Assembly: GCA_002269645.1 (NCBI GenBank)
Contig: NIVC01001989.1
Location: 151,578-215,577, forward strand
Reading direction: 5' to 3'
Source of the DNA: Macrostomum lignano
Lineage: Eukaryota
DNA length: 64,000 bases
The stretch's first letter is position 1; each line of letters opens with the position of its first letter. The position numbers were made by a program, and so were the translations under genes. This document shows, one piece after another, positions 10,251-60,765 of this stretch. Under the pieces are notes generated by a model. The model worked only from the letters and a program-made list of their open reading frames with translations. It was not told the DNA's origin and ran no database searches.

Positions 10251-10662
10251 AAGAGGTTAAAGTAGTAACTTCATCATCATAATTTGACTTTATTAATTCA
10301 TCAAATTATTCATTAATGAGCTAATGTGGCTTACCTTAAAACTAAAATGCCACCTTCAATCAGTAGCACCGTTAAATGGAATAAATTGATTAGCTTTGAC
10401 GTCAAGAGTGACAAATCTGCTCACAATTCCAATGCACCTCCCAACCCATGGACAGGCTGCGATGCACAGTACGGCTAGTGGACATTCCGTCCCCTGCGCC
10501 TGCGATTGGTCGAGGGCTGCAAAATCCCCGGCAGGACCCGAAGCTCCGCCCGACCCTATACGCGCCTCGTCCATCTCTATATATGAACCGGCAGCTGGCA
10601 AAATCCTTCAGCCACTTCCCTTGCCGACTCGACTGGCCACCGGACAACAAAAGGCAACAGCG

Positions 10663-12994
10663 ATGAACTCCGCCCAGGCTGCCGAATCGCTGGCCGCGAT
10701 CTGCAACGGCACCGAGGCGATGGCCGCCTGCATCGAGGAGGCAATCTACAGCGTCACGGTCGAGACCAAGCTGTCCGAGAGATTCTACCAGGCTGCCGCA
10801 GCCGGCTACATCGCGGTTCTGCTGTGCGCGGTGCTGGCCAACAGCCTCATGCTGTACGCCATCCTGTCAACCTGGCGCGAGAGCCGGGCATCGAATTATC
10901 GCTGCTTCTATTTGAATTTGATCGTCTGCGACCTGCTGTCGGCGCTGCTGATCCTGCCGGCTAGCGGCCGCGACCAGATCGACGACCGCTGGCTGTTGGG
11001 CGAGGCCGGCTGCAAGGCGGTGCACGCGCTCAGCGTCTGCCTCATGTGCAGCAGCGTGTTGACCCTCACCGGCGTCAGCTGGCTGCGCTGCCTCGGCGCC
11101 GGCCGGCTGACCTTCAACTGGATTGACAGGCGGCGCAGCCTCGGCCGTGAGCTGGCCGCCATCGGCGCCATCTGGTTGCTGGCCGGCCTGGCCGCCTTGC
11201 CCGCTGGCGCGGTGTCCGAGCTGCAGGAGCAGTACGACGGCATCTCCGGCCACCTCGCGGACAAACTGGACCGGCCAATCAGCTGGCCGGTGTGCCGAGA
11301 AAACTGGGGCAACCAGTCGGCGACAGAGGCCGACGCGGAGGGGCAGCGGCAGTTCAACGCCAGCTTCTGGTGAGCTCAGGCTGTTGCGCAACTTAAGCTC
11401 AAATTCAGATTGAGTTCGAAGTTTTGCCCGCTTCAGAGAACTGGGGACATCAGAGTGCTAAAGTAGCAAAACTGTAGGCGGGCTGCGGCAGAGCACTAAG
11501 AGGGTAGGGACAGAGGGTAGGGGCAGAGGGTAGCGACAGAGGGTAGGGACAGAGGATAGGGACAGAGGATAGGGACAGAGGGTAGGGACAGAGGGTAGGG
11601 ACAGAGGGTAGGGACAGAGGGTAGGGACAGAGGGTTAGGGACAGAGGGTAGGGACAGAGGGTTAGGGACAGAGGGTTAGGGACAGAGGGTAGGGACAGAG
11701 GATAGGGACAGAGGGTAGGGACAGAGGGTAGGGACAGAGGATAGGGACAGAGGATAGGGACAGAGGATAGGGACAGAGGGTAGGGACAGAGGGTAGGGAC
11801 AGAGGGTAGGGACAGAGGGTAGAGACAGAGGGTGGGACAGAGGGTAGGGACAGAGGATAGGGACAGAGGATAGGGACAGAGGGTAGGGACAGAGGGTAGT
11901 GACAGAGGGTAGGGACAGAGGATAGGGACAGAGGGTTAGGGACAGAGAGTAGGGACAGAGGGTTAGGGACAGAGGGTAGGGACAGAGGGTAGGGACAGAG
12001 GGTAGGGACAGAGGGTAGAGACAGAGGGTAGGGACAGAGGGTAGGGACAGAGGGTAGGGACAGAGGGTTAGGGACAGAGGGTTAGGGACAGAGGGTAGGG
12101 ACAGAGGGTAGGGACAGAGGGTAGGGACAGAGGGTAGGGACAGAGGGTAGGGACAGAGGGTAGGGACAGAGGTAGGGACAGAGCACAAAGGCAGACGCTG
12201 AGCATACCCATTAACCCACGGCCTGCAGGTACGGCCTGGCCATCCTATGCTTGGCCTTCCTCCTGCCGCTGCTCAGCCTGGCTGCCGCCTACTGCCGCAT
12301 CTGCCGCGTCATCTACCTGTCCAACCGCATTCTGAACGCGCATCGTCGCTGGCAGGAGATGGTCAGCGCTGGCTATCGCGGTGCTGCGGACACGACCCTC
12401 GTACGGCTCAGCAGCCTGCAGCAGCGCCAGCAGCAGCAACAGCAACAGCAACAACAGAAGCAGCAGCAGCAGCGCCAGCAGCAGCGGCGGCACCAGGCCA
12501 CTCCGCCGCTGCCGCCATCCACCTGCAATGCCATCAGCCAGCGTCGCCGACTGGCAACCTCTCGCCGAATGTTCCTCCTAGCCGTAGCCCTAGTGGTGAT
12601 TTTCGCCGTCACCTGGCTGCCAATCCAGTGCTTTCAGCTCATCCGGGCCCGCCCGGACTCCAGGGTGTGGAACGCTGAACTGTCGCACAAGTTGGCCTTC
12701 GTATTCCACCTGCTGGCGCTGTCGAACTGTCTCGTGAACCCCTGCTTCCTGGTGGCCACGCATTCGCCATACAGGCGCCGGCTTCGCCGTCTGGTTCGCA
12801 ACTTCTACAGGCGCCGACGCCGGCACGGCTGCTGCGTCTGTTGCCTGCTCTGCTTGTGCAACATCTTCGGCTCCTGTTGCGACTGTTGCTGCTGTGGCGG
12901 TCGCGACGGCAGAGACGGCTGCAACACGTGCTGGCTGTGCCCGTTCCGGAAGCGAGCCGGGGACCGGCAGTTCGAGCTGAACGATCTCAGTTGA
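10663..12994 (+). CDS. Rhodopsin-family (class A) GPCR, neuropeptide Y/NPF-receptor-like; 2 exons (10663-11369, 12229-12994), about 490 aa
   Basis: Seven hydrophobic segments: TM1 AN, TM2 NLIVCDLL..LP, ECL1 WLLGEAGCK, ECL2 VCRENW, TM5 FLLP..Y, TM6 FAVTWLP, TM7 HLLALSNCLVNP. The GTGAGC donor at 11370 and CTGCAG acceptor ending 12228 rejoin the Trp codon in frame (F-W-Y-G-L). Start uncertain: in-frame ATGs also at 10432 and 10462. Confidence 0.9.
11499..12183 (+). repeat. 13-bp G-rich minisatellite (ACAGAGGGTAGGG), about 50 copies, filling most of the GPCR intron
   Basis: Direct reading; lies inside intron 11370-12228. Confidence 0.95.
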
Positions 12995-19828: not shown

Positions 19829-20229
19829 GTCCGTGCAGTTTTCACCCCGTTGAAACAATGGTGCAGAAAAGTTTAAGCCATGAAATCCTTTCCGCCTCTT
19901 TAATGAGGCTTGCAGGCAGAAATGGGAAATTTGGAGAACAAAGAGGCGAACGTTTAGGGAGCCATATTTGGAGGGAAAACTAACAAAATCAGTATTTCTA
20001 ATTAAATAGACAGACCTGCAGCATCAGTAAAAAGAGGCTTCATATATGTACAACAGAAATTTGGCCCTTTTAAATAATTAGCTCGTATAGAAAAGTGAGA
20101 AGTAGATTTTGTTCGAGTTGTCTAGTTTCGGTGCTGGGAGGGCTGAATAAGCGCGCCTGAGATAAGCGCGCATGTGTATTCTTTACGATTTGACATAGAT
20201 AGCGCGCACAGGCAGAAGCGCGCAAACGC

Positions 20230-20299
20230 GGCAGTGACACAAGTGCGCAGACAATTTTGACGGTAGTGACACAAGAGCGCAGACCATTTCGACGGTAGT
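20230..20299. repeat. Left part of a 32-bp tandem array (GACGGTAGTGACACAAGAGCGCAGACCATTTC) split by the Gypsy insertion
   Basis: The same unit resumes immediately after the 3' LTR at 24238. Confidence 0.9.
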
Positions 20300-20457
20300 T
20301 GTTGTGGGTTGATGGCTTTGCCATAGACATTTTTGTTACGCGACTGCGTTGATGAATTGAACCATGCTATTGAGTTATGAAATAAATGATAGACGCGTCA
20401 GAGGTCAACAGACCGCTAGACTGACAATTGCCAAAGGCTAAAGCCAAAAGCACAACA
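20300..20457 (+). repeat. 5' LTR
   Basis: TG...CA ends, internal AATAAA; matches the 3' LTR except TTATGA vs TCATGA. Confidence 0.97.
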
Positions 20458-20485
20458 GTGGCGTCGGCAAGCATAGGCTACGAAA

Positions 20486-23400
20486 ATGCCTGGAAGTACG
20501 CCAGCATCGCCAACTAAAGGAGTTGGTAAAACGGTTTCGAGCGACAAAGCACCACCGCTTGCGATCTCATCGAAATCAGTCCAAGCGACAAAGTCGGCAA
20601 CAGCGACAGCGCAGAACCCAAGCGCACAACTATCGAGAGGACAGCAAGTTGACATCGAAAAACTCGATGAAAGTTCGAACTTCCAGAGGTGGTTGGACCG
20701 ATTCACACTGTGCAGCGAACTCAACGGCTGGCAGGACGACACGAAAAACAAGCTGCTGCTGATGAAGCTCAGCACCAAGCTGTACGACGCATTGGCAGAT
20801 CGAGCCGCTCCCAAGAAGCCGGGAGAAAAGAGCTTCGATGAACTGACCAAACTACTGGCCAGCATCCTGGAACCAAAGACGTTCGTCATGGCTGAGAGAT
20901 TCAATTTCCAGCATATCACTCGCACGGCATCAATGAGCATTCGTGAGTATGCACAGCAACTCTGCATGCAGGCAGACAAGTGTCAGTTTGGCCTATCCAG
21001 AGATGAGAGACTGAGAGATCAGCTCGTATTCGGTTTGAATGACAAGGTGGCCATCAGCAAGTTATTGGAACAGGACTTCAGCACTCTCACGTTTGAGACA
21101 GCTATCAACATCGCTGAGGCGCACCAGAACCTATCACAAACGCAAATACTAAAGAGTTGCACCAGTCAGCCGCAGTCTTCTGAAGTAATCAAAATTTCAG
21201 CATCGGTGGCCAGAGGCTCCCACTCTACAAGCTCCAAGTGTGGCAATGTGGCACAATGCATGGCTCCAATGGAGGGTGTCCTGCGAAAGGAAAAACGTGC
21301 AACAAATGTGGCATGCAAAACCACTTCGCAACAGTTTGCAAAACGAAATCAACTGGTTTTGGCAAAGGCCGAAAATCGTTCAAAAGCCCGTCAGCATCTG
21401 GTCAATTTAGGCGAGCTGCAGTGTGGCCAAGGACCACAAGCTTTGTAGATGCAAGCGAAGCTGAACAGGAGGATTGTTTTCACATTTGACATCCCGTTGA
21501 TAGCTACACCGTGCCTGTTAGGCTCAGACACACGAGCGGGTCGATGCTTAGCGTGAACGCACAAATCGATACTGGGGCAGGAGTTTCGGTAATGTCAAAA
21601 ACGAACTGGAAACGATTGGGTTGTCCAAAGCTGACACCTACAGACACTGTTCTGACAACATACGCTGATACGCAGATGAAGGTCTTTGGAACACACGACA
21701 CTGAGTTGGAGTACAATGACGAGTTCATTCCAATCACATTCTTCATTGTGGAATCGCAGAGGAACTTTGTTCTGGTTGGCCGAGACAAGCTCAATTTCAC
21801 GCTAAACGCTGTAGACAACAGCTGCACATCGGCAACCCAGTCATGCGAATTTCCACCAGTAACTCTTAAGATCAAGGAAGGAACCACTCCAATTCATTGC
21901 AAACCCAGGCCGCTACCCTTCGCACTCAGAAATCGATCGGTTGCTTGAAGAAGACACCATCAAGCCCGTCAAGTTCAGTGAATGGGCCTCACCAATTGTC
22001 GTGGTCAAGAAACCTTCTGGAAAGCTCAGACTTTGCGTCGACTACAAGGTCACAATCAATTCTCATCTTATCAACGATTCATATCCGATGCCTGCACCTG
22101 ACGAAGTGATTGCAACTGCTGCTGGCAGCCGGATATACACTCGTCTGGACCTAGAGAAAGCTTATCACCAGATCCCACTAGATGAAGCTTCCAAAGAGCT
22201 GACAGTAATGTCAACACCATTTGGGATGTTCGCTTTCAACAAGCTTCCGTTCGGAGTGAAAACAGCACCTGCGATCTTCCAGCGGTACATTAGCCAAGTC
22301 CTACAAGGAATTCCTGGCGTCATTGCCTACGTAGACGACATATTGATATGCGGCAAAGGCGTAGAACAATTGGCAGTTCGTGAGACGGAAGTATTGCATC
22401 GACTAAACCAGCAAGGATTGAAGATCAACACGGCGAAAAGTGAATTCCGCAAGACTTCGATCAAGTTTCTAGGCTACTTATTGGAAGGAGATCAGCTCAA
22501 GCCGGACCCAGCCAAAGTGAAGGCAATCCAGGACATGACACCACCGCAGAACGTTGGCGAGCTTGAATCCTTCCTGGGTCTCGTAAATTTTAGCGGCAAG
22601 TTCATCAGAAACCAAGCTGCACTGACCAAGCCTCTCAATCGACTAAGAAAGAAAAATGAGGACTTCGTGTGGACAAAGGAGTGTCAAATAGCATTTGACG
22701 AAATCAAGGTCACTCTCTCTGATCAATCGAGTCTTCAAATATTTGATCCGGAGAAGCCCATTGAACTGGAATGCGACAGTTCTCAGCGAGCTCTGGGCGG
22801 AGTGTTGACACAAAGCGGTCAAGTCGTGCTGTACATGAGCAAGACTCTGTCTGACGCCGAAACAAAATATTCGCAAATAGAGCGTGAAGGCCTGGCACTG
22901 GTTTGGTGCATTCAAAGATGCCATCGGTTCTTGTATGGCCGGAGGTTCACACTGATAACTGATCACCGGCCCCTCACATACATATTCGCGCCAGACAAAC
23001 AGCTGCCCACCAGAGTTTCAGCTCGACTACAACGATGGGCAATCATACTAGCTGCTTATGACTATGACATACAGTATCGACCATCAAAGCTAATGCTGTC
23101 GGATGCGCTATCTCGACTGGTGCCCGCTAAGCCGAATGCACAGACAGCATCGATCGGACTCCTAGAACCTGACAACCCCTGGGAGCGAGTGCACATTGAT
23201 TTTGCTGGTCCGATAGAGGGCAAGTACCTACTCATCATTGTGGATGCGCACTCGAGCTACCCGGAAGTCTTCATCACGAGCGACATGAAAGGCCGACAGT
23301 CATTTCCAGACTTAGAAGATTGTTCTCACAACAGGGGGTGCCCAAGTGTCTCGTGTCAGACAACGGCCCTAGTTTTGTGAGCGAAGCGGTGACCGGCTGG

Positions 23401-23874
23401 CTCACCCAGATTGGCTGTTCGCACATCACAACGCCCGCCTACCATCCACAGAGCAACGGCATTGCAGAGCAAATGGTGCGAACCGTCAAAGAGACAATCA
23501 AGACCAATGGTTTATCCCAAAGAAGTATTGACAGATTTCTACTGTTCTACAGAGCTGCCAAAGGGAAGCAGCAAGCATCACCGTCTGAGTTGTTGAACGG
23601 CAGACAAATACTCGTAAGACTCCCCATCTCGGAGAGCAGCACTCAGTCCAAGTGGATCCCAGGAGAATCACTCATCTACCGTGCATCGAGTTCTCATGAG
23701 CCACGAACTGTGAGATTCGCCAAAATGCTTGGCAGCAACACAGCAGTCGTCACCACAGAGACTGGACGAAATCTAAAGACCCACCTCGATCAACTACGAA
23801 TCGGTGAGGTACATGAGGCTCACGGGAACTACGGAAATGGGGGATTCCAAGCCCGGTGGCAACGGTCCAAGTGA
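20486..23874 (+). pseudogene. Disrupted gag-pol of the Gypsy element
   Basis: Gag (FQRWLDRF..., ERFNFQHITR, LRDQLVFG), Zn knuckle CPAKGKTCNKCGMQNHFATVC, protease IDTGA, RT WASPIVVV/LCVDYK/YVDD, RNase H CDSS...YSQIERE...TDHRPL, integrase HIDFAGP/SDNGP/HPQSNGIAEQ. Frameshifts near 21250, 21930 and 23300; in-frame TGA at 21487. Confidence 0.95.
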
Positions 23875-24079
23875 CGACGGCCAACAGACGCGTCCGTCAT
23901 CGACAGACACTGAGACACTACCGGGAACAGAACAAGCTGAGAGAGCACAACAGCAACAGACTGAGGCCGGAGTTCAATCCAAGCCGTCACCCAGGCGAAG
24001 CGAACGCTTGGCCAAGAAAACTAGAATTTTTTATCGCACCTGAGTGATAATTGTACACCTACCTATAGAAGAGGGAGGG

Positions 24080-24237
24080 TGTTGTGGGTTGATGGCTTTG
24101 CCATAGACATTTTTGTTACGCGACTGCGTTGATGAATTGAACCATGCTATTGAGTCATGAAATAAATGATAGACGCGTCAGAGGTCAACAGACCGCTAGA
24201 CTGACAATTGCCAAAGGCTAAAGCCAAAAGCACAACA
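24080..24237 (+). repeat. 3' LTR
   Basis: Preceded by the polypurine tract and followed by the TSD GTAGT. Confidence 0.97.
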
Positions 24238-24690
24238 GTAGTGACACAAGAGCGCAGATCATTTTGACGGTAGTGACACAAGAGCGCAGACCATTTCGAC
24301 GGTAGTGACACAAGAGCGCAGACCATTTCGACGGTAGTGACACAAGAGCGCAGACCATTTTGACGGTAGTGACACAAGAGCGCAGACCATTTCGACGGTA
24401 GTGACACAAGAGCGCAGACCATTTCGACGGTAGTGACACAAGAGCGCAGACCATTTCGACGGTAGTGACACAAGAGCGCAGACCATTTCGACGGTAGTGA
24501 CACAAGAGCACAGACCATTTCGACGGTAGTGACACAAGAGCGCAGACAATTTTGACGGTAGCTTAAACCGTGTCTATTTGTGTAAAGAAACTGACTACGT
24601 GCAGAATACAAGTGTACGGAAGCAGTGTCACAAGAGCGCAGACCATTTCGATGGAAGTGTCACAAAAGCGCAGACCATTTCGACGGTAGA
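24238..24690. repeat. Right part of the 32-bp tandem array (about 10 copies to 24560, degenerate copies to ~24690)
   Basis: Direct reading. Confidence 0.92.
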
Positions 24691-26638: not shown

Positions 26639-26644
26639 TTTATT
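26639..26644 (-). terminator. Polyadenylation signal AATAAA of the lectin-Ig receptor gene
   Basis: TTTATT on + about 20 nt beyond the stop codon at 26663. Confidence 0.55.
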
Positions 26645-26662: not shown

Positions 26663-29600
26663 CTACTCATCATACTCATTCACAAGTACACTAGTGGAGC
26701 CTGCAGGAGTCGATACATTCGCCAGCAGGTCGTACTCATCCTCAACTACTCCAAAGTAAGTTGTAGGAGTCGATGCACTCGCCAGCAGGTCGTACTCATC
26801 CTCAACTACTCCAACGTGAGTTGCAGGAGTCGATACATTCGCCAGCAGGTCGTACTCATCCTCAACTACTCCAATGTGAGTTGTAGGAGTCGATGCACTC
26901 GCCAGCAGGTCGTACTCATCCTTAACTACTCCAATGTGAGTTGCAGGAGTCGATGCACTCGCCAGCAGGTCGTACTCATCCTCAACTACTCCAACGTGAG
27001 TTGCAGGAGTCGATGCACTCGCCAGCAGGTCGTACTCATCCTCAACTACTCCAAAGTAAGTTGCAGGAGTCGATGCACTCGCCAGCAGGTCGTACTCATC
27101 CTCAACTACTCCAACGTGAGTTGCAGGAGTCGATGCACTCGCCAGCACGTCGTACTCATTCTCAACTACTCCGGAGTGTGGCTTGACAATTGGAGGAGTA
27201 CCACTCCCGCGGTGGCATGAATGCCCGTCAACAACCGCTCTCGGGGATTTCTGGGACAGTTTGGACAGAGCAATGAATTCGCTGTTACATATGCCATCCG
27301 CATCAGCTTTGACAGGTAGCTCTTTCGCTGCATTGCGACGACAGCAGAGCAATCTAAACGAGACGCAGAGACCAGAAAAAACCAACAAGCTGCCCAGAAT
27401 GAAGCTCGTTAGAAACTGCGGCAAGCCAAAACCTCCCGGATTGTCGTCTTCTGCAATGGTTTCGGCATTCAAATACATGCCTAATGTGTTAAATAAAAGT
27501 GGTCACCCAGTCAGTCAGTGGTCACCCATGTAGATGACCTGTTTGTACAATATTCTTCGTACAAGCTTAGAGACTAAATGTATAGGCTCGTTCAGACCAT
27601 TTTCAAATGAGACCAGTTTTGGAATGATCATGCGGCTTATACATATTTTTCGTGGCTATGCAAACCAGGAGTGACAATGTTCGTTTGATTCATCATGATT
27701 CACGAAGACCATTCTCACCTTGCGATGGCCTGCCAAGTGTCGAACTGACAGTGTCCAGGATGAGCCCTGACTGATTCACCAGACAATGGACGGACGCCGA
27801 ATCAGCCCACTCCTTCGGAACAATCAGCGAAAACGTGCTGCTTGTGTTACTCGACTGAAAGTGGTGCAGTTTTATATTTCTTATTAGTATGAATGCAAAG
27901 ATAGCTATTTGAATTTTTAGCAAACGAGCCATCCTATACTTGAAGTAGATTATCCTGCAATTGTTCTTTTCGACAAAGAGAATTTCCAACTACTTAAGCT
28001 ATAGAATGGATCCCGAAGCCGACTAAAACAACTAGAATGGGACCTAGATGAGATGTCTTGGCGTTTCTAGTCGATTGTTCTGATAAGTTATCAATTGCAG
28101 CTTTGCTTCTATAGCTTAATTTGACATCCTCTTTGTAGTGATCCGCTAGTTTGGTGTTAGGCGTCGCACTATTGTCAGCGGCTTCCCTCGCCCTCGCCCT
28201 CGCCCTAAGTCGCTGTCTGCCGCTGGTCAGCCTCCCTCCCTTTTTTCTGCCTGTTCTCTGTCGCCCCCCATCTCTTCTCTGGGCTCTTGCTTGCAGCCAC
28301 GAGCTTCTCTGCTGTGGCCTGCTCTGCGTTTCGTTCCTGTCCTGAGATCAAGCTGGCGGCCTGTTTCCCTTGTCAGGTGAGCAAGTCACTTGACAAGTCT
28401 TGTTTTCTCGAAGTCCTAAAGTGCAGTAGACATGTTTACTGTACTTGTTGGCCCATGTTTACAGGAGGAATCACGTGCTTCAGGGCCCTTGCCTTCTCTA
28501 AGGTAATAGGTGACTCATGTTTCTAAAAATAGATAATGAGTCATGCGGCCCTGTGCACTTTACCCGCAGACCCTGCCTTCTCTAAGGCACGAGGTCCGGC
28601 GCACACTGGCGCAGCGGGGATTCCCCTATAAATACGTGCCCCTCACCCTTGGTTCAGTCAAGGAGTTCTTCTTTAGTCTAGTTTTCCAGACTTCGTTCAG
28701 TTGCCCATTTAAGCTATCTGTAATTGGCCTGACTAAACTTAGACGCCGAAGCCTAAGGGAGGCTAACACTGCCTTCTCAGCCACCCGCTGAGCCCGGCGA
28801 GATCTGCTGAACAGGACAGGACGCCTTGTTCATTAATCTTCAGATCTGCACGCTGTGCTGAGTTCCTTGACTTGTTTATTTCGTTCCGACGGGAAGCTCA
28901 CCTCACCGAAGGCCGAGACATGAAGGAACTGGTGGCAGCACTACCGACGCTACTAAGAGCTAATAAGAAAGCTTCCGAGAGAAGAGGCTCGAGACTTAAG
29001 GTAAAGCTTAAGTGACTAAATCGGGAAGCAAAAAGCGATCTACTTCGTTGGTGGCAGCGGTGGGATTCAAAGACCTACCATGCCACCTTGAGACAACCCT
29101 AAGTACTTCATCTTTTATCAATAGTGCACTTTCAGACTTGAGGAAGGGTAGCTGTGGTGCACTGTCGGACCTGAGGAAGGGTAGCTGTGGTGCACTGTCG
29201 GACCTGAGGGAGGGTAGCTGTGGTGCGCTGTCGGATCTGAGGAAGGGTAGCTGTGGTGCACTGTCGGACCTGAGGGAGGGTAGCTGTGGTGCGCTGTCGG
29301 ATCTGAGGAAGGGTAGCTGTGGTGCACTGTCGGACCTGAGGGAGGGTAGCTGTGGTGCGCTGTCGGATCTGAGGAAGGGTAGCTGTGGTGCACTGTCGGA
29401 CCTGAGGGAGGGTAGATGTGGTGCACTGTCGGATCTGAGGAAGGGTAGCTGTGGTGCACTGTCGGACCTGAGGGAGGGTAGCTGTGGTGCACTGTCGGAC
29501 CTGAGGGAGGGTAGATGTGGTGCACTGTCGGACCTGAGGGAGGGTAGATGTGGTGCACTGTCGGACCTGAGGGAGAGTGGCGCACACCTCAAAAGACAAA

Positions 29601-32600
29601 TTAGTCGCTTACAGACACAGATGTCAGACGACTCCGCCCATGCCTATGCTTTAGGTGGCAGGTGTGGGTTGTAGCCAAACAACTTCTGCTCCGAAGAGTT
29701 GGAATCGTGCTCACAGTGAATGTGAATGTGAAGCCAGGCCGCCAATCAGTTTCTGGCGGCTGATTGAACAGCGTTTTGCACGAATCTGCGGGAGATTGTG
29801 GAGACGGTACTTGCACTATCTAGTGGCTATATCTGGACTTGAACCTGTGTCCTTCGGTGCAAGAGAGCAATGTAGGGGACTCGCCCTCTGTAAAACACTG
29901 AACGGTACAAAAAGGCTGAGTGCTATGCAGTTTCACAGTGAGCGCGCACAAATCAACTTCGGTATGCTCTCGGTTATTTGCGACTCCTCCGAAGTTCTCT
30001 CCAGAGAGTAGGCGCACGAAATGCTCCCGCCGACCATCGACTCGTTGACTCGTAGGCTGAACGTGCTGCTGCGAAATTCCAGTCCGTCACCCACGTCAGT
30101 CAACTGCGGGATTCAGTGAATTGAATGTATTGAAGTGCACTTAAGTGTGGTTCATTGTCTTGGGTTGCAATTGGAGTCGACTGGAATGCATTGGAGTGTG
30201 TTGCAGTGCAGCCCAAACTACCTCTTCTGCACCCCAACGAACCACAAAGAGCTGAGGATAAAGTCCCATCCCACTCAACATAAAAATCCCCGACTCGAAC
30301 ATTGTCATGCTTGGTCTCCAAGATCAGCTTCGCCGAGCCAGCTCGATCAATCAGCAGGCAGTGGTGCAGCGGCCTTGGAAACGCCGGCTCGGTGCTGAAG
30401 GTCACCAGCGCTTCGGTCCCCACGACCCACACGGATCCGCCCATGTCCAGATGAACAGCTTTCGGCTTTGCTGCGGAGTATTTTGAGTAAAAATTATTTA
30501 CTTTTTACTTATGCTTCTGCTGCCTAAAATGACTCTTGAGACGCATAAATGATCATGAGCAAACAAATCGCTCAAAAAGAAGAATTCTGTACTCGCAAAT
30601 CGTGTAATTTTTACTGCAGAATACATTAGCTAGATAGGGCTTCGGAGTTTCCTTGACCCAAATGTCAAGCTTCAGAGAAACTATATTTGTTAATTTCATA
30701 CAGTACTAGAACAGACAGGGTCCACGAGATTTGCCCATAGAAGATTTGCCCGCAATGCTTTTTTCCTGCAGCGCATTTTTCCACGTGGCAGATTTTGTCT
30801 GCACTGCCTCCCCAATGCTTAGTAAGTCTTATTAAAGATATTTGGGGAACAAAGCGACATGGAATATGCATGAATTAATAGATGCATGTATATATAGAAC
30901 TGAGTACCTACAAGAAAAATATAAACTTGATATGCAGTTACTATCAATGGGTTTTGATCGGATAAATGTCTTTATTAAGACTTAATAAGCATTAGGGGGC
31001 ATGCAAAATATAGCTGTCACGTGACTAAATGCGCCGCAAGAAAAAAAGCATTTCGGGCAAATCTCGGCAGGAAAAAAACTCGGCGGGCAATTCACTCGCG
31101 GGCAAATTCCACTGCGGACAAAGCTCGGCGGGCAATTCGTCTGCGAGCAATTCTCGTGCTCCCGAACAGAATACTCAGAAATTCACCTGAAACTCGTTGT
31201 TCTAGAACTGGTTGTTAAATAATGAAGCAGTGAAGCACAGCTACCCTCCCTCACGTCCGACATTGCACCACTCCCACAGCTACAATCCCTCAGGTCCGAC
31301 AGTGCACCACAGCTACCCTTCCTCAGGTCCGACAGTGCACCACAGCTACCCTTCCTCAGGTCCGACAGTGCACCACAGCTACCCTTCCTCAGGTCGACAG
31401 CGCACTACAGCTACCCTCCCTCAGGTCGACAGCGCACTACAGCTACCCTACTTAACGTAGGAAAATTAACGATTTGAAAGTGCAGCGAACTTCTTGTTTG
31501 CTTGATTTTCTATTGTAGAAGCACGAATGCATGTACAGAAGAACCGGGCTGCCTACAGATGAACCCGATCGTCCTATTGAATCGGCCACTGGCTCCGCTG
31601 GCGCACCGGAAGCTGCAGTCCAATTGACTGTTGCGAAATCGGCCGTTGATCGTCAGCAGGTAGGCCGCCGCACTGCCTGCGGCTTCCTAAAAATATTGTA
31701 AAAGTCATTCACGTGTACCACTGAAAACTGCTTTTTTAGAAAGCCAGTTCCTCTTTCTCGTTCTGTTTACTGTTTTATAGCTTTTTTCTTTTGGTGCCAT
31801 CCTAAGGGAGCGCTCCTCCTTTCTGGAGACCTCCCTTTGTGCGCCAGTCACGTGGTGGCCCTACTCCCTCTACATGCATCACGTACCAGTTACGCTCGTA
31901 GGTTGGTGCTGCTTGATAACCTCCTGCAAACAGCTTTCGACAAGCAAACATCCTGCAAGCAAACATCCTGCAAGCAAACTTCCAGCAAACAAGCATCCTG
32001 CAAAAAAGCATCCTGAAAACAAACGTCCTGCAAACAAACATTCTGCAAAAACATCCTGCAAACAAACATCCTGCAAGCAAACATCCTGCAAGCAAACATC
32101 CTGCAAGCAAACATCCTGCAAGCAAACATTCTGCAAACAAACATCCTGCAAGCAAACATCCTGCAAGCAAACATCCTGCAAGCAAACATTCTGCAAGCAA
32201 ACATCCTGCAAACAAACATCCTGCAAGCAAACATCCTGCAAGCAAACATCCTGCAAGCAAACATCCTGCAAACAAACATCCTGCAAGCAAACATCCTGCA
32301 AACAAACATCCTGCAAACAAACATCCTGCAAACAAACATCCTGCAAGCAAACATCCTGCAAACAAACATCCTGCAAACAAGCATCCTGCAAGCAAACATC
32401 CTGCAAGCAAACTTCCAGCAAACAAACACCCTGCAAGCAAACATCCTGAAAACAAACATCCTGCAAACAAACATCCAGCAAGCAAACATCCTGCAAGCAA
32501 ACTTCCAGCAAACAAACACCCTGCAAGCAAACATCCTGAAAACAAACATCCTGCAAACAAGCATCCTGCAAGCAAACATCCTGTAAGCAAACTTCCAGCA

Positions 32601-40999: not shown

Positions 41000-43900
41000 T
41001 CACTTCCAAGTGACATCGTAGCCTTTCCACGGCCGGCCGGGCGCCAGGTGGATCCGGCGGCCGGATTTGAACACGGGCACAACGCCGCTATAGGCGCAGC
41101 GGGCCACGCCGTCTTTGAAGTCCGGCATGATGTCCAGCCGCTTGGCCATGGCAACGAACTCTTTTGGCCCGTTGTACTGGACACGAACCTCGGCTGGCGC
41201 GCCGGATCCGACTCCCAGAGCAATGTCCAGCGTCACCGATGGCAGTTTGTACACCCGGTCCAGGTAATAGGAATCGTAATTAGATTTCAACAGGTAGCTC
41301 AGATCCATAGCAGCGTAGTTAACCGGCCGTTTGCTCAGCTCAATGAAGCGCAGGTATTTATCAAAATACAGGCCGTTGCTGACTCCCACCCGGCCGAATG
41401 TGTAGCTGCGGGACACCTCGGGGCGGAGGCAGGCTCGGCCGCGCCGGACGCCGGCCTTGCGCATGTGATCGTCCCAGTAGGCAGCCGGCCAGCCTGTCCG
41501 CAACTCCAGCCAGGTTGGCCGGAGCAGCATCCAGCCCAGGCCGGGGAAGAAGTCGGTCCGGTAGAACAGGTCGGATCGGGCCGTGTCGATCAGGTTGGAC
41601 TTGCCGTTGTCGTTCCAGGCCGACACGCACCACACGGTGGGGTCCTGGGCCATCACGCGGCCCAGATGGATAAAATAGTCGAAAAAGTCTGGCGCTATGT
41701 CCAAATCGTCTTCGACAACAATAGCGGCTGTGTAGTTCATTGTAAGGAATACCTTGATTGGGGAACAGTGAAAGTCATTTAACATAGTTGCTAGGCAATT
41801 AGCATCTGCTATAACTACGAAGGTAGGATTCTAACCTATATTTTGTGCGTCAGAGTGCCAATATAATTGATGCGTCACATGACTCATACCAATGCATTGC
41901 ATAACGATTCTGTGATTGGAATTTACGAATTTGAGCTTAAACAGACTTTTATAAATGCTGTTATGTTTTAAAAATTTAAAGTTTATTAATCTGCTAAAAA
42001 AATTAAACTACTACCTTTAATTATAATTCTACCACTATTCAGCCGCGTTGCGTACTAACCGCTACCAACTATGCTTAACTCACAGCGTTGGCGGATAATA
42101 CGCTAACCCACTTAGCTAAGGGGTTCCAATATACTGGTCCATTACATTCGACTGCCTGACCCTACTTAACCTAAACCTAAATCATGGCAAGTCAAATGGA
42201 TGGCGGTCAGCTACGCAAAGACAAACAAGAAAATGTATTGTTCTCACTTGATCAAACGCCCATCGAAAGTGCCTGGATATGTAATAATAACCAACAAGAG
42301 CTCTCTCCTTGGCCGGCACACTGATTGGGCTCAGGTCTGGCTGGCGAATGTGCACCAGCTTGTTACCGTAGGACTGAATAACGCTAGCCGTTTCAGCGTG
42401 CCCGCAGTCCTGTGACACTATAACGTGAAACTGGTGCGGCCCGGAGGTCGGCATGTACTTGAATATCTGGTCCAGGCTTCTGCGCACAGTTGGCCGATTG
42501 CAGGCGATCACCAGCACGGCGATGCTGGCTGGCAGGCTGTCCGCTGGGCTCAGCGTGGCCATCACCGGCCTGGGCGAAGTCGGCTCACCGATGCCACCGG
42601 CTACAAGATTAACAGAGAAATGTACGTAGAAGGTGAAACCCGATGAAAACGGTGCCTAGACAAAGAAGCGTCCCAGATTCGTTGCAGGTAGCACAGGTAA
42701 AATAGGAAAGAAGTGACTCTGGACGACTCTAAAAGTCGTTCTAAGAGTCAATTTGAGGCGCTGTATTTTCTGCGACTCTAAAACTCTGGGGCTGTAGACT
42801 TGTATCTGAGGCGTGATAGAGTCGCTGTAGAATCACATTTTGCATTTATAACAACTCCATTTAGTCTAATTGAGTTAGTAGAAAGTTGAGCGCTAACACG
42901 ACTCTTGGACGACTTTGCGACTCTTTTACGATTCTGCAACTCACGTGATGCTCTCGTGAATAATTAAGGCATTAAGCCATAGTAAAATAACTACGGCCAA
43001 CTCAGCATTTTTTGTGTAAGCTACTTTCAGTAGTGAGCTTAAAAAGAAGCATTTTAACGTATTTTAGGACAGGACTCATTTTTTGGTCCTCTGACCCCCA
43101 TCTGAACCCCTTCACCCGCGTCTTTCGACACAGAATCTCTGCCCCAATTTTTATTGCCCTCCTCGGTGTTGCGGCCTAACGCTGGCATGTACATTCTCAG
43201 TGGCTTTGGCTTGGCTAATGTACATCACGGCTGCACCAATAGCCAGTTGTTTGCGTCTGCGAGTCACTCCAACTACCGGTCTTCATAAAATAGCTTACGC
43301 ATTCTTCCTCACTACTGAGCTGAAAGTAGAGAAACTTTTAAAAGGATTTAGCACTGCCAATGAGTGACTGTAAGGATTAGCACTGCCAATGAGTGACTGT
43401 AAGGATTAGCACTGCCAATGAGTGACTGTAAGGATTAGCACTGCCAATGAGTGACTGTAAGGATTAGCACTGCCAATGAGTGACTGCAAGGATTAGCACT
43501 GCCAATGAGTGACTGCAAGAATTAGCACTGCCAATGAGTGACTGTAAGGATTAGCACTGCCAATGAGTGACTGTAAGGATTAGCACTGCCAATGAGTGAC
43601 TGCAAGGATTAGCACTGCCAATGAGTGACTGCAAGAATTAGCACTGCCAATGAGTGACTGTAAGGATTAGCACTGCCAATGAGTGACTGTAAGGATTAGC
43701 ACTGCCAATGAGTGACTGTAAGGATTAGCACTGCCAATGAGTGACTGTAAGGATTAGCACTGCCAATGAGTGACTGTAAGGATTAGCACTGCCAATGAGT
43801 GACTGTAAGGATTAGCACTGCCAATGAGTGACTGTAAGGATTAGCACTGCCAATGAGTGACTGTAAGAATTAGCACTGCCAATGAGTGACTGTAAGGATT

Positions 43901-55081: not shown

Positions 55082-58000
55082 CTAGTTTTCGACCTCGCTC
55101 AGCAGGCTGTGATAGGCCACTGTCGGTGACTCATCGCGCCGTCTGCCAAGCCAGCTGCGCAGCCAGAAAAAATGAACAGCAGCTAGCAGCAGGATGACTG
55201 ATGGCAGCGCCACGGCTACGGCAATAAGAATTCTAGTAATAGTTGAGTCCAAGGACACGGCTTGGCCAGTGCCATCGTGTCCCGAGTCGCCGAGGCAGAG
55301 GCTGCGGAACTGGCCGGGGCTGAGGCGGCAGCCGGCCAGCAGCGCAGCCAGTCGGTGCAGCGGGCAATTGAGGCCAGCGCCGCAGCCGGGGACCCGGATG
55401 GGCAGCGGCTCCGCCTGGCTGTCATTCCTGTAGAAGATTTTCACCTCGGCCAGCGAGCCGTTCCGGGCTGCAGTTGCGTGCAGCTCGAACATCAGGCAGG
55501 CGGCGTAGTTCGGCCACACCGAGTAGTCCTTGTTGCCAAGGGCGGCTAGAAGCGGCACCAGGGTCACATCGTGGCCAGAGTAGATCATCAGGCGTCGGCC
55601 TCGGCCAGCGGCCGCGTCCTCCATGCCGGACAGGAGGTCGTCTATCAGGACGCCGCTTCGCATTTGTCGCAGCTCCACGGTGCTGGCGAATTCCGACCAG
55701 GAGAACCGGCCGAGCTGGCGCAGGCGAAGCTGAGTGTCCGGCACCAGGGCCCAGGCTGGCAGGCTGAGATTGGCTGTGCGAAGCACCATCAGAGTGTCAA
55801 TCACCTGTCAAGGTGGGGCGGCGAGATGCTCTCAATGATTGCTGAGATGTCAATGCTTACTGGGGGAATTGCTGAGATGTCAAGGCTTATTGGGGGAATC
55901 ACTGAGATGTCAAGGCTTACTGGGGAATTGCTGAGATGTCAAGGCTTACTGGGGAATTGCTAAGAAGTCAAGGCAAATAGGATTCACGTAAATAATTTCC
56001 GTCCCTTGCTAATGGGGCGCCCCGAAGGGGGGACAAGATTGCAAGTTACTCTCTAAAATTAATTAATAATTATGATAAATGCTTATGTAAGGCCCTTTTA
56101 TTGGAGACGAACAAATCCGTATAGTTTTTATTGAGCGATTAATAAAGTCTATCAATCCTATCCATCATCCCATCTTATCCAGAGTTCACCTCTCGAAGTA
56201 AAAAATCTTGGCCTGGAACCCCCCCCCCCAAAGTTTCTCGTGTCTTCCGACTTCTGGACTCGGTGCCTGTAATAGCTGCACTGTGCCATAAAAACCAATG
56301 ACAGAAGTTCATGAAGAACGTTAATGTCTAGTCGTATAAAAAAACGACAGTAAGTGCATGTGACAATGCCATGCATCCTTTAATTAAAGAAATCTGCCTC
56401 CCTAAGACTGCTGATCCAATCGAAGGTCCCTAACAGGAACTGGGACGATACAGAAGACACGTGATGCAAATGCATTAGATTTCCGACTCAAAAATGAGTT
56501 GGAGCCAATACAATTAGCTGCTGCTGGGGCGAAACTGGCACAGCTGCTGACGGGCAGCGCCTCCATGTGGCAACGGTGGTGTACAATTAGCTACCGTATG
56601 TCGGGGCACAACGGAAAGCAAGGCTACAACAATGGCAACATCCGCGGCTTACCTTGTAGACATTGTTGAGCGTAATTGACCCGCGTCCCGAGCCGGCCTC
56701 GGCCGACAGGCGGCGCAGAAAGCCGGCCATCTCAACTTCTAAGCGTCGCCGCTCCGACGAGTTGCGACGAGCCTCCGTCGTTAGTTGGACAAATCGCTGT
56801 CTGCAGCCTTCGAAATCGCTGGGCAGCAGCATCGGGTCCGCGCTGCTAGCCACCGTGTGTACCGGAATCGGCTGCCAGCTGAGCCCCGCCTGCCACACCT
56901 GGTCGCCAGTTGGCGGGAACAGGCCCGCCAGACAGGCCTGCGCGCTCATCAGCGTGCGGTCGATGTCGCTGGATCGGACGCGGTGCTCGCTGCTGTTGTA
57001 CCTGGCAAGTCAGTGCAGTAGACTGGGGCTGTTAAGCAGAATGCCGCACAAGTAAATCATGCAAATGGGGATGTCAAGTTAAGCAACGGGATGGATCCCG
57101 AAGTAAAGATCCAAACCAAACCGGTAGCAAAAAGCTCTACATCTAGACAATGCATTACGAAAGCCTGTTACGAAATTACCTTATTTTCTCAGAGTTAAAT
57201 TGGTTTGCAGGGAAGAAAATAGGCAATAGCGCTTATTCATGCTCGCTAGGATCCCTACTCTACTCAGAATAGGTAATCCTAGGTAAACGAGACTTCCCGC
57301 TCTTTAATTAGCGCTGCATAGAGATAGACTGAGCAATTAATTTTCTAAAAAGGAAATATAATTAAATTATTGGGTTTGGATAATTGGGTTAAAGCAAAAA
57401 ATAAGAAATCACTCTCTCTATTCAGTGACCAATAAAACTGAAAGGCTTAATGAATGCAAAATCGGAAGCAGATTTTTCGATGCATTTCCTTATTGATTTT
57501 GATTCTAAAAACTGACTGCAGTTGATAAAGGGCCAGACGAGTAGTTTGGGGCAGATCGGCTCAGCGGTAAACGCGCCTGACTCTCACGCTACGGCTGTTG
57601 GTTCGATTCCTCGATTCCCTGTGCAGCCTCATTAATTGAAAGCTTGCACACGAAATTTTGTCGGGGTCGTTGAGCCATTCACGACCAATGAGGGCCAGCC
57701 CCAAGGCACAGAGACTGTACATGCCTGACGATTGGACAGTCAGGGCTGCTGTACACCCTGTGTGAACACCGGCGCCCGGCGCTCCCACCGGCGCTCCCAC
57801 CGGCGCTCCCACCGGCGCCCCGGATGTCAGCCTCAAGCCATGAGGCGCACCATGCCACGCTGCTCTCACTTCAAGACACACTGAATTTTAATTGTTCCTT
57901 TCACTGTTGTTTCAACCCTATACATGTAGCTATACTATTAGCACTTTCATCTTGCTTGAATGCTTGAACATTGCTAAGTACAATCAGCATAAATGCTCTT

Positions 58001-60765
58001 AGGATTAGCTAGAGCCGAAGATTCTGCACCTCCTTCATACTTTCTGTTTTGGAAAGCCTGCACTACTGCGATATTGACATTTTTGCATCCAATTGTGACC
58101 GCCTGTGGCAACGCCCTGTTGAAATGTTCAACATGTTTTGACAAACTTGAACTTGAACTTGAACTTTGCATCCATGACGCAGTGCAACGGAAAAAAATCG
58201 TCAAATTAGCCGTTGCAATTATCAGTATTAAACCAGAGTTCTCAAAACAGGTTGAACGGTTGATGAAGCGAGTGGACGCTTTCCAAAATGCTAAGTAAAA
58301 GCAGACAATCAGCCCAGCAACTGTCTTGTTCTTCAAATTTGCCTCACTAAGACTGTTGAAAATCAATCGTTTAGCGCTGTACACCCTTCTCCAGCTGGAA
58401 ATTGCAGCTTTGAGCATCAGCTAATTACAGGGGCTACTTGCAAGGCGAAATTTTCGAAATGAAAATTGTTGCTGATAAACCTCTTAAACCCATAAATTTT
58501 AGCGAGAAAAACAGCCTCACAAAACAAGGACGAAAATATTGACGCGTACTCGCGATTAAAAATCCTTTTCTGTCTTGTTTAAGCAAGGTGACGTCAAAAG
58601 TGCAAAAATATTATTTTAGGAGCGTAGCATGGTCAAAATTAAGCTTCCATGACAAGCCCTTTGCGTTCTTTCGACAGTCTAGCATATGGTCCACAATTCT
58701 AGGCTGATATTACTACTTCACAGCAACTGCAGATATGCACTGCTTTCGTCCTCACTGCTTGTGACTTTTTTATTAGAGGCAGGGGGGTTGTGTGCACCCT
58801 GGCGCACTTTAAGCGACATAGGCACACAACCGGCGAGAGGCATTACTGCCAATTCTGCCGACTCCCCTGAGCAGGCACACAAGCGCGCGGATACGTACGC
58901 AGGCACACACTCACACAGGAGTGTACAGCGGCCCTAACTTTATTTATCGTTAGGCATGTACACTTCACTGCGCCTTGGGGGTTGGCTCTCAAGGCCGTTA
59001 ATTGCACGAGCAGAGCCAAGCCGAGATTCCAATTCAGCCCCAAATTAATGTGACTGCACTTGGAATCGAGCCTGGGCCGCTGGCACACCAGAGCCTGCGC
59101 TAGACCACTGGGCTACGGCCCCCTCACTGCTTGTGACAGTCATGTCTAAAAGAAAATCTACTGGTGAATTTATAGAGCCGCTATGGACAAAATTTATGCT
59201 TGTTAGACTAAATTAAACGCCACGGTTATTTAGATAGAGTGATCCTGCAGAGAGAAAAGTTCAACAGATGACAGTTGTTAACCACTTCGAAGGTCACATG
59301 TCACCTTCAACAGTTTTACGTCTTCAACAGAAGAGCAGAGCCACTGGAAGCGTGACTCACGCTTCACCAACTTTGCAGTTTACAGGCGAGGCCAGATCAA
59401 CGCCTGCTGAAAATGGTGCGTGCTGCGTGTGGAACGGAGCGTAGAATCCCCCGTAGACAGCCGTTGAACTGTGGAATGCTGCGAAAAGTGTCAGGAAATT
59501 CCCCAGGATTGCGTTCGACGCTTTGTTCTGGAAATTCCGCGTCGAGTCAACGACCTGTTACTTGCGAGAGGAGGCTACACGCGTTTCTGAAGCTCGATCT
59601 GAACCATAGACAGGTGTGCACTTTCTGGATGAGTTGCGTTTGCTTCTAGGTAGAGAGCTGCGTTTAAAATTCTTCCCAGTGTATACGTATTTTTTCTATT
59701 GCGTCCATTGTGCATGTATTCTCATATTTGGAGAACCCAACTAATATATATAAATGAACTTGTCAATCGAACCTCGGACTAAACACATTGTTGCACCTTT
59801 CAATCAACGCCAGCTCACCTGGATCCGAGAAACTCGCCGTACCGCTTGCGAATAAATTTGCCCAATTCGAACTGGTTCCGCTTGCCAATATTAGTGAGCT
59901 GGCCCAGCCCGTCGCGCCAAGTGTTGGCCACTGTGTAGGTGTCGTTTGGCAGCGGGTGGATCGGCGACCGGTGCCCGTGGCGGAACACCAGGCCGACGTG
60001 CAGCAGCCGGCAGTCGCCAAGCGGAGCCCGCAGGTGCAGCAGGAGGAGGGCTGTCACCAGACGCGTGACCGATACTAGGGAAATCTGTGAGCAGCCTGGC
60101 AGGGTGAGTGAAAAGTTGAGTGAAAAGTCACACAACCAAAAGTGGTGCAACCAAGAACGACTTAAGTGAATCGACTGAGATAGGAACTTTTTTATTTTCT
60201 GGAGAAAAAAATCAACTAGGCTTAAAAGTATCCGCAACAGAGCGAAGACAAATTATTCAATTAATGAATGACCTGTTTCAAAGCTTCGAAAATTTTTATG
60301 AACCTATGTATTGAGCCTCGATCTCATTTTTGAAAGTTTCGTACAATACTGAAAATGACACAGCTCCATAATATTTTCAAATCTTTCCTTTACCAAGACT
60401 TGCTGTGTAAATGTATGTGTGTCATTGCAGTAGTGTCGGCTTTTTCTAATTATTGTCACTTTTGATAAAATAACTGAAATTGATTACTAAAGATTTCATT
60501 GTAAAACATTCCAAGTCACTGAAAAATATTGACTAATATACCTAAAACAGCTCGTACGTGATATGAAAAATGGAATGGACTTTTTAATTATTACAAAGTT
60601 AATTAAAGATTCCAGCTGATTTATCTTCTCGCGCAAATCCAGCCAGTCAATTATTTTCTAAGAAGCGAGACTCATCCCTGCGTGGCCATCTGGGTGCAAG
60701 CAAACCAAGCATTTTCTAACCTTGCGCTGGACCGCGGCTGTTGACATCAGCGCGGCTGGCAGCAT
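55082..60765 (-). CDS. ACP2: Histidine acid phosphatase, lysosomal (ACP2)/prostatic type; 4 exons (60765-60721, 60084-59819, 57001-56653, 55804-55082), about 460 aa
   Basis: Signal-like N-terminus; catalytic RHGHRSP; GLGQLTNIG; [20 protein letters not shown]; WQPIPVHT; SGHDVT proton-donor motif; C-terminal TM; tail YHSL (YxxL sorting motif). Splice phases 0, 2 and 0 are all consistent. The ortholog label is inferred from the TM plus tail. Confidence 0.92.
55820..55965. repeat. ~30-bp tandem repeat x5 (GGGGAATTGCTGAGATGTCAAGGCTTACT) in the last phosphatase intron
   Basis: Direct reading. Confidence 0.85.
57548..57885 (+). mobile_element. Second tRNA-derived SINE subfamily sharing the central core; contains a 12-bp (GGCGCTCCCACC) micro-expansion
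   Basis: Head GGGCAGATCGGCTCAGCGGTAAACGCG...GGTTCGATTCC has A and B boxes. Core CCCCAAGGC..TGTACATGCCTGACGATT..CAGGGCTGCTGTACACCCTGTGTGA. Confidence 0.65.
58766..59123 (-). mobile_element. Full-length tRNA-derived SINE, copy 2 (in phosphatase intron 2)
   Basis: Reverse complement of 7557-7928 with few differences. TSD TCACTGCTTGTGAC at 58752-58765 and 59124-59137. Confidence 0.9.

Follow-up and report, generated by a model that had tools for sequence, protein, structure and literature searches.

Background

Tails with many similar tyrosine motifs, thought to be largely unstructured, are known from LAT, PAG, the substrate domain of p130Cas (with many YxxP) and nephrin (YDxV). LAT and PAG also carry a juxtamembrane Cys pair, and their multivalency drives the assembly of SH2-protein clusters. 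How many phospho-acceptor motifs a protein carries can be determined by DNA repeat copy number, as with the human PER3 54-bp variable-number tandem repeat and the variable tyrosine-phosphorylation repeats of Helicobacter CagA. Here, we analyzed a 60-bp tandem array located in a 64-kb stretch of the Macrostomum lignano genome (contig NIVC01001989.1, the whole stretch being called the window hereafter), in which eight near-identical units, each with an acidic tyrosine motif, lie in the last exon of a gene that, as judged from its sequence, probably encodes an orphan (lineage-restricted) single-pass membrane protein of M. lignano. We propose that this tail would constitute a multivalent phosphotyrosine (pTyr)/adaptor docking platform, whose valency would come from mutational expansion and not from demonstrated selection, a reading to which we give a little less than an even chance. 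In our view, the array is a further example of repeat-encoded arrays of short linear motifs in membrane protein tails, here in an orphan gene.

Compared to these systems, the array shows several differences. The arrays of LAT, PAG, Cas and nephrin are ancient, have diverged at the DNA level and use the motifs YxN, YxxP and YDxV, whereas the M. lignano array is a near-perfect repeat with YDLL motifs and without orthologues. For PER3 and CagA, copy-number polymorphism and phosphorylation have both been demonstrated, whereas both are putative for the M. lignano tail. Closer in spacing is HGAL, in which pY128 and pY148, 20 residues apart and described as "approximate ITAM motifs" (ITAM, immunoreceptor tyrosine-based activation motif), jointly dock SYK (PMC11518702), so that a 20-residue tyrosine spacing has a functional precedent. 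HGAL (GCSAM) and GCSAML (C1ORF150) resemble the tail by their acidic YxxL-type motifs 20 residues apart, their anchorage to the membrane and a nearby Cys pair, but HGAL is a small vertebrate protein that is lipid-anchored (myristoyl/palmitoyl), without transmembrane (TM) helix or ectodomain, and with one motif pair instead of eight motifs. In addition, HGAL has a Grb2 YxN motif and a PDZ-binding C-terminus (PMC11518702), whereas the tail contains no YxN and ends in ...NEYDE, which does not correspond to X-S/T-X-Phi.

The hemITAM consists of a YxxL with three acidic residues at positions -2 to -4, which are required for phosphorylation, and Syk bridges two separate phosphorylated motifs of this type instead of one compact ITAM (PMC3576117). 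The hemITAM receptors (CLEC-2, Dectin-1 and CLEC9A) are similar to the tail in that their YxxL is preceded by three acidic residues, although these occupy positions -2 to -4 in hemITAMs and -1 to -3 in the tail. Moreover, each chain of these receptors, which are C-type lectins of type II, has a single motif in its N-terminal tail, whereas the locus described here would encode an Ig-like protein of type I in which eight motifs occur in cis. By analogy, the tail may work like a hemITAM, though it is not a member of this class.

It should be noticed that in a scallop, Argopecten irradians, the N-terminal TM helix of protein P0013 (XP_069141799.1) is followed by 18-residue tandem units, each with K-E-E-Y-D-K-S-E-D. 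Like the M. lignano protein, P0013 combines a membrane anchor with an acidic tyrosine motif multiplied by repeats, with no evident homology between the two proteins.

Structure and variation of the array

The array is described here from one allele, that of the window (Table 1). Translation of the minus strand gives eight units of exactly 60 bp with the register kept throughout, and the Tandem Repeats Finder program reports a single array at 26702-27172 (period 60, 7.8 copies, 94% matches, 0% indels, score 837). The open reading frame (ORF) that carries the array (27478-26663, minus strand) reaches the first unit at residue 103 (nucleotide 27172). Unit 1 begins with GVVENEYDVL, units 2-4 and 6-8 with GVVEDEYDLL and unit 5 with GVVKDEYDLL, while unit 8 is followed by STSVLVNEYDE and the stop codon. 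Eight occurrences of the 30-nt unit core were counted in the window, all of them within the array (0 occurrences in 100 shuffles), and no dispersed repeat family containing the 60-bp unit was found in the window. A degenerate "unit 0" located 5′ of the array (AVVDGHSCHRGSGTPP) was considered and rejected as not significant, since 184 of 1000 shuffles equalled its score. Besides its tyrosine motif, every unit has a Ser-Thr-Pro site, giving eight Thr-Pro sites over 26693-27172 that are candidate targets of proline-directed Ser/Thr kinases.

A reading of the letters alone (hereafter the sequence-only reading) had previously described the pattern (E/K)(D/N)EYD(L/V)L eight times plus a terminal NEYDE at 26663-27180, and the translation agrees exactly with this description, including its coordinates. 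The same reading counted nine tyrosine motifs; nine EYD are indeed present, but the cytoplasmic part holds 11 tyrosines because two units have an additional one (TYF variant). The term VNTR used there presupposes a copy number that differs between alleles, whereas the window shows a single allele, so that such variation is putative. It had also stated that variation falls mostly in the spacer whereas EYD is invariant, which is literally true but not beyond chance: of the eight variable nucleotide columns among the units, three fall within the 7-residue motif (E>K, D>N and L>V) vs 2.8 expected, and all eight would miss the 9 nt of EYD by chance with a probability of 0.27. All eight variable columns are at codon position 1 or 2 and all are non-synonymous. 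With 16 synonymous sites among the 60 of the unit, eight non-synonymous changes out of eight have a probability of P = 0.084 under neutrality. Statistically, the argument that variation avoids the motif, and with it the argument for selection, consequently fails. The unit variants are shared in a mosaic manner (NV in units 6 and 8, YF in 2 and 7, HI in 4 and 5, and T17 in 5 and 7), the pattern that unequal exchange or conversion would produce. The array units are young.

The sequence following unit 8 was identified as a partial and diverged ninth copy, whose match to the unit is equalled in 4 of 5000 shuffles. Its Tyr and Asp codons differ from those of the unit only synonymously (TAC>TAT and GAC>GAT), even though only one of the nine single-base changes is synonymous in each of these codons. 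The terminal copy is a true diverged unit, and it lends support to translation in the E-Y-D frame and to a constraint on Tyr-Asp. Downstream of the stop codon, the AATAAA signal has about a 2% chance of being so placed, since either strand of the window contains this hexamer about once every 1.3 kb.

Table 1. Coordinates of the features of the repeat-tail gene in the window
Feature	Position	Strand	Description
Array of eight units	26693..27172	-	60-bp in-frame units of 20 residues, consensus GVVEDEYDLLASASTPATHV; each with YxxPhi, 7/8 with [DE]xxxLL
Partial ninth copy, diverged	26666..26692	-	SVLVNEYDE; 18/27 nt match to the unit
Stop codon TAG	26663..26665	-	From ORF/translation
AATAAA poly(A) signal	26639..26644	-	Begins 18 nt past the stop
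Exon L (last)	26663..27450	-	Acceptor cattgcag/AAGACGAC; junction reproduced in UniRef A0A1I8HFT5
Exon C	27719..27854	-	Second half of Ig-like domain (SSNTSSTFSLIVPKEWADSASVHCLVNQSG...); donor AAG/GTGAGA, donor score 6.7
Exon B2 (probable)	29715..29785	-	First half of the Ig-like domain of exon C (SCKTLFNQPPETDW...); phase-compatible GT-AG, donor 1.05
Exon B (tentative)	29950..30103	-	Second half of a preceding Ig-like domain (STFSLRVNES...SISCAYS); phase-compatible, donor -3.55
Predicted TM helix	27347..27415	-	FLTSFILGSLLVFSGLCVSFRLL; Kyte-Doolittle 19-residue window 2.05, maximum of the protein
Juxtamembrane Cys-Cys-Arg-Arg	27335..27346	-	Stop-transfer charges; candidate palmitoylation pair
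Cytoplasmic linker	27173..27334	-	Non-repeat, 54 residues, basic; low model confidence

Gene model and membrane topology

When 1.84 billion representative proteins were searched exhaustively with phmmer, a single real relative was obtained, UniRef100_A0A1I8HFT5 (P0001), an "Ig-like domain-containing protein" of M. lignano; the other matches were unrelated repeat proteins and were discarded. Homology searches with the full ORF, its non-repeat part and the upstream exons as queries, one of which missed even this fragment, gave no other relative. All of its 99 residues are 100% identical to exon C spliced to the start of exon L, and its junction (...STLGRPSQ/EDDNPGGFGLPQ...) corresponds to the exon at 27854-27719 joined to the tail exon at the acceptor 27451/27450. 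As P0001 spans both exons, the gene is confirmed as spliced. An alternative acceptor at 27481, which would yield GMYLNAETIA, was rejected in favour of that at 27451, which is the one used in the database model. P0001 is a fragment, since it has no start Met and its last residues (...ADADGI) are 39 residues short of the array; this end would result either from a contig-end cut or from a truncated duplicate copy without the tail. The end of P0001 corresponds to positions 27288-27284 of the window, where the next codon is TGT, one substitution from TGA.

The exon chain B-B2-C-L displays GT-AG borders and compatible phases, and its 1149 nt remain in frame to the stop. According to the donor scores, which were obtained from a generic splice matrix, the donor of exon C is strong, that of B2 acceptable and that of B weak, and exon B is tentative for this reason; exon B2 has no database support. 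The ORF 30504-30103 was tried as exon A and rejected because it cannot join in phase, and nothing acceptable was found as a phase-0 donor or first exon 5′ of exon B. Since there is no Met after exon B, the translation start lies further upstream. Alternatively, M27478 would serve as start if the transcript begins in the intron, which would give a LAT-like protein with a 21-residue ectodomain.

Two 33-bp minisatellites (29124-29575 and 31228-31449) are mutual reverse complements in a foldback-like arrangement. The ~1.65 kb between them holds both candidate Ig-like exons, B and B2, as well as ORF 30504-30103, which has no place in the exon chain; the first minisatellite sits in the B2-C intron. 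Further upstream of the repeat-tail gene and on the same strand, an exon of GNT-I (N-acetylglucosaminyltransferase I; Pfam E = 2e-96) is located at 41000-41785 (minus strand). Trans-splicing concerns 38.8% of M. lignano genes, and the two genes could therefore share a transcription unit.

Regarding the ectodomain, exons B2 and C together provide a C-x11-W arrangement with the second Cys 45 residues past the first one. All 14 PDB matches of the ectodomain are Ig light chains on the E-F strands, although every one of them is weak (best E = 0.02); the Pfam search of the ectodomain gave no match, and the name assigned automatically by UniProt to A0A1I8HFT5 is Ig-like. These observations suggest that the ectodomain of this membrane protein is probably Ig-like. 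The predicted TM helix is covered by an AlphaFold helix at residues 19-51 of the last-exon ORF, and the charge is -3 in the 15 residues before it and +2 in the 15 residues after it (CCRRNAAKE...), with a net charge of +4 for the 58-residue stretch following the helix, Cys-Cys-Arg-Arg included. Moreover, the three N-x-S/T sequons found before the TM helix are all within the Ig-like exons. Given that the array comes after the TM helix, the Cys-Cys-Arg-Arg and the linker, and that the charges follow the positive-inside pattern, the repeat tail is likely cytoplasmic, with a type I topology. This is in agreement with the cytoplasmic tail assumed by the sequence-only reading. The array also shares its frame with a real membrane-protein exon.

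Motif content of the tail

Motifs were counted with regular expressions on the cytoplasmic part. YxxPhi was matched 10 times, by the eight unit motifs and two YFGV, and [DE]xxxL[LI] seven times, because 7 of the 8 units read DEYDLL (see PMC2121048 and PMC2730553 for the definitions of these sorting signals). The tail also displays seven overlapping pairs of Y..[LI]/YxxL located exactly 20 residues apart, and acidic residues occupy positions -1, -2 and -3 of the unit Tyr, with all three present in 6 of 8 units. In contrast to these matches, the canonical ITAM (YxxL/I, 6-12 residues, YxxL/I) was not found in the tail, where the gap is 16 residues, nor was the immunoreceptor tyrosine-based inhibitory motif (ITIM, [ILVS]-x-Y-x-x-[ILV]), position -2 being Asp or Asn. 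There were likewise no matches in the cytoplasmic part to Grb2 YxN, PI3K YxxM, Crk YxxP or NPxY, and the GGA-type DxxLL was rejected with 0 matches, the residue at the Asp position being Glu. The Nck SH2 domain has the ligand consensus pY-D-x-V/P, as in nephrin and in Tir of enteropathogenic Escherichia coli (EPEC), and no YDx[V/P] is present in the tail. Position +3 is Leu in all units (YDLL or YDVL), and the protein ends before this position in the terminal YDE.

With regard to the sequence-only reading, these counts bear out its statements that the units are not canonical ITIMs and that the distance between them exceeds that of a canonical ITAM, and the acidic context of the Tyr is a reasonable argument for kinase substrates. 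The Nck preference that it put forward has to be abandoned. It made only a brief mention of YxxL as an AP-2 signal, although every unit fits YxxPhi, and it missed the acidic dileucine of 7 of the 8 units. As this dileucine overlaps YxxPhi, the reading of the tail in terms of adaptor-protein (AP) sorting is as well founded as that in terms of pTyr.

The tail could consequently be a pure sorting array, in which the unphosphorylated YxxPhi and [DE]xxxLL would bind AP-2 (and AP-1 or AP-3) without SH2 signalling. The Ig-like receptor would then be endocytosed constitutively or sent to lysosomes, and extra copies would add avidity or nothing. These are the only canonical motif classes fully matched by the units, and the ITAM, ITIM, Grb2, Crk, PI3K and Nck-type patterns are all at zero. 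However, one signal is enough in known cargo of clathrin adaptors, which carry one or two sorting signals, whereas eight overlapping pairs are found here and such a number would be unexplained; in addition, a Tyr directly preceded by three acidic residues and followed by Asp is a context commonly seen in substrates of tyrosine kinases. We consider that sorting alone is a doubtful, though serious, explanation of the tail, keeping in mind that sorting and signalling are not mutually exclusive.

Under the docking-platform proposal, the ancestral tail probably had one or two acidic Tyr motifs (N-E-Y-D), which are retained by the older-looking copies at the edges (unit 1 and the terminal partial copy), and replication slippage or unequal exchange, both rampant in M. 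lignano, would have recently raised the motif to eight near-identical copies. Each unit would then combine several signals in one short linear motif, acidic-acidic-acidic-Y-D-L-L, which in its unphosphorylated state would fit clathrin adaptors, through YxxPhi for the mu subunit and [DE]xxxLL for the sigma/large-subunit site. An acidophilic tyrosine kinase of Src or Syk type may phosphorylate the units, and the resulting pYxxL sites, with their fixed 20-residue spacing, could dock SH2 proteins in a multivalent manner, as the HGAL pair docks SYK. Our analysis shows the array with its frame, the C-L junction, the TM helix with its flanking charges and the motif matches, whereas in this scheme we infer that the array is translated and phosphorylated, which partners it binds, and whether its copy number has an effect. 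Flatworms do possess Src and Syk kinases (PMC2820527).

Evidence for and against the docking platform

Several observations weigh against this proposal. The schistosome Syk SmTK4 has been reported to be without the ITAM-binding consensus (PMC2820527), and a Syk-specific model is consequently not warranted. HGAL (PF15666) is the only Pfam family matched by the tail (41.8-43.1 bits vs a cut-off of 27, over profile positions 53-86 of 88, the part with the paired Tyr motifs), but the cut-off is passed only through the sum of weak matches, three units alone reaching 18.8 bits vs 27, so that the match is at the motif level and homology is not shown. No database protein or transcript spans the array, the sole model stopping before it, and no homologue was found among 5.8 billion proteins, hence no conservation test. 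Neither a 5′ end, nor a signal peptide, nor a start codon was found upstream of exon B, and the spliced frame remains without start Met. Among the 21 larger arrays of the window, 11 are open in at least two frames, and the 60-bp array itself is open in two frames across its full length; as open frames are common in these arrays, an open frame is no evidence of coding here. The array units also give no indication of purifying selection (8 non-synonymous and 0 synonymous variable sites). Finally, the charge-hydropathy balance of the tail is borderline and not clearly that of a disordered region, with a mean hydropathy of 0.512 vs a boundary of 0.485.

Alternatively, the array could be a by-product, yet another minisatellite that chances to be open in the frame of the exon, either lying outside the mature protein (in a truncated or pseudogenised copy, or beyond an earlier stop or end as in the database model) or translated with a neutral copy number. 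This explanation draws on the end of the sole database model before the array, on the missing homologues, on the exclusively non-synonymous differences among units, and on the repeat-rich setting, as tandem repeats make up 26.3% of the window (38 merged arrays, of which 21 are at least 200 bp, with periods of 4-126 bp) and open frames through arrays are common; by our own estimate, ~38% of random 20-codon units would be open in any one frame. Because many arrays of the window are open in several frames, the ORF lists of the M. lignano genome are full of repeat artefacts. Furthermore, the sequenced DV1 line has duplicated chromosomes, so that redundant and decaying copies are expected (PMC5730564). 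However, the frame is continuous from the validated splice junction through the TM helix, the linker and all eight units, with no indel. In addition, E-Y-D is preserved in the terminal copy, where two of its codons have changed synonymously, an event of ~1-6% if unconstrained, AATAAA is found 18 nt past the stop, and the database model is without start too and hence a fragment at least at its 5′ end. The continuous frame, the terminal copy and the position of AATAAA together support the array as coding. We judge the by-product explanation to be rather unlikely while giving it real weight. A log-likelihood of codon usage, trained on 925 codons from ORFs of the window with Pfam support, did not tell the frames apart; note that the GC content at third codon positions of the training genes is 0.80 vs 0.45-0.71 at the tail gene.

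The borderline hydropathy, which is marginally on the folded side, speaks for another possibility, in which the eight units would fold as a beta-solenoid-like domain with two strands per 20 residues and the tyrosines would be structural instead of docking sites. AlphaFold2 (AF2), when run on the single sequence of the last-exon ORF, does predict such a regular solenoid, with two strands per unit and a predicted local distance difference test (pLDDT) score of 70-80 over the array vs ~30 in the linker. In contrast, Foldseek found no PDB match at E <= 0.001 but generic solenoids only (TM-score <= 0.35), the predictor was run without alignment, and the tail has a net charge of -32, so that four acidic residues per turn would stack uncompensated. 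The beta-solenoid therefore looks like an AF2 artefact, and a folded array is unlikely; we give structural tyrosines in a solenoid a very low probability.

Origin and meaning of the copy number

Turning to how eight copies arose, the M. lignano genome contains 15% of simple and tandem repeats (PMC5730564), and the window itself provides an example of array growth. A long terminal repeat (LTR) retrotransposon is located at 20229-24561, with gag-protease-reverse transcriptase-integrase ORFs at 20486-23874 (plus strand), and ends ~2 kb from the 60-bp array. Its LTR segments (20291-20459 and 24071-24239) are 97% identical, whereas a 32-bp minisatellite has 2.2 copies at the 5′ LTR vs 10.1 copies at the 3′ LTR. 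These unequal copy numbers mean that the array size changed after insertion, and they are direct evidence of fast array growth. In such a repeat-prone genome, where LTR-linked arrays grow, the copy number of the 60-bp array is explained by mutation without selection, and mutational expansion is the simpler and more economical explanation of the eight copies. The view that the copy number acts as a "genetic dial" for signalling finds no support in our analysis.

A stronger form of the docking reading would be that the array is a recent cis-array of eight hemITAM-like or HGAL-like pYxxL motifs whose copy number varies between lines or homeologues and alters signalling or condensates, which we hold to be improbable. 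If true, it would represent a natural and still-evolving receptor valency tuned by repeat slippage in an animal, and would give a hint at the origin of multi-tyrosine scaffolds such as LAT or Cas. Under the docking platform as proposed above, if the tail is translated and phosphorylated, a multi-tyrosine signalling scaffold would have been caught at birth, its copies still being 94% identical at the DNA level. M. lignano is competent for transgenesis, so the copy number could be changed experimentally and the origin of tails such as those of LAT, nephrin and Cas would become testable. As it stands, the finding is mainly an illustration of how M. lignano minisatellites enter coding exons and can multiply short linear motifs, and it also calls for caution, since near-identical repeat units should not be read as selection.

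Other features of the window

A rhodopsin-family G protein-coupled receptor (GPCR) gene is located at 10396-12994 (plus strand) and is split into two ORFs, the gap between them holding a 13-bp minisatellite of 52 copies (11499-12183). A (CAG)29 run encoding poly-Gln (12409-12496) lies inside the second GPCR ORF, between both stretches that match 7tm_1, which makes this gene a further example of repeats within a gene. On the minus strand, a histidine acid phosphatase, which has a TM segment at its C-terminus, was identified at 55082-55804 and 59815-60237.

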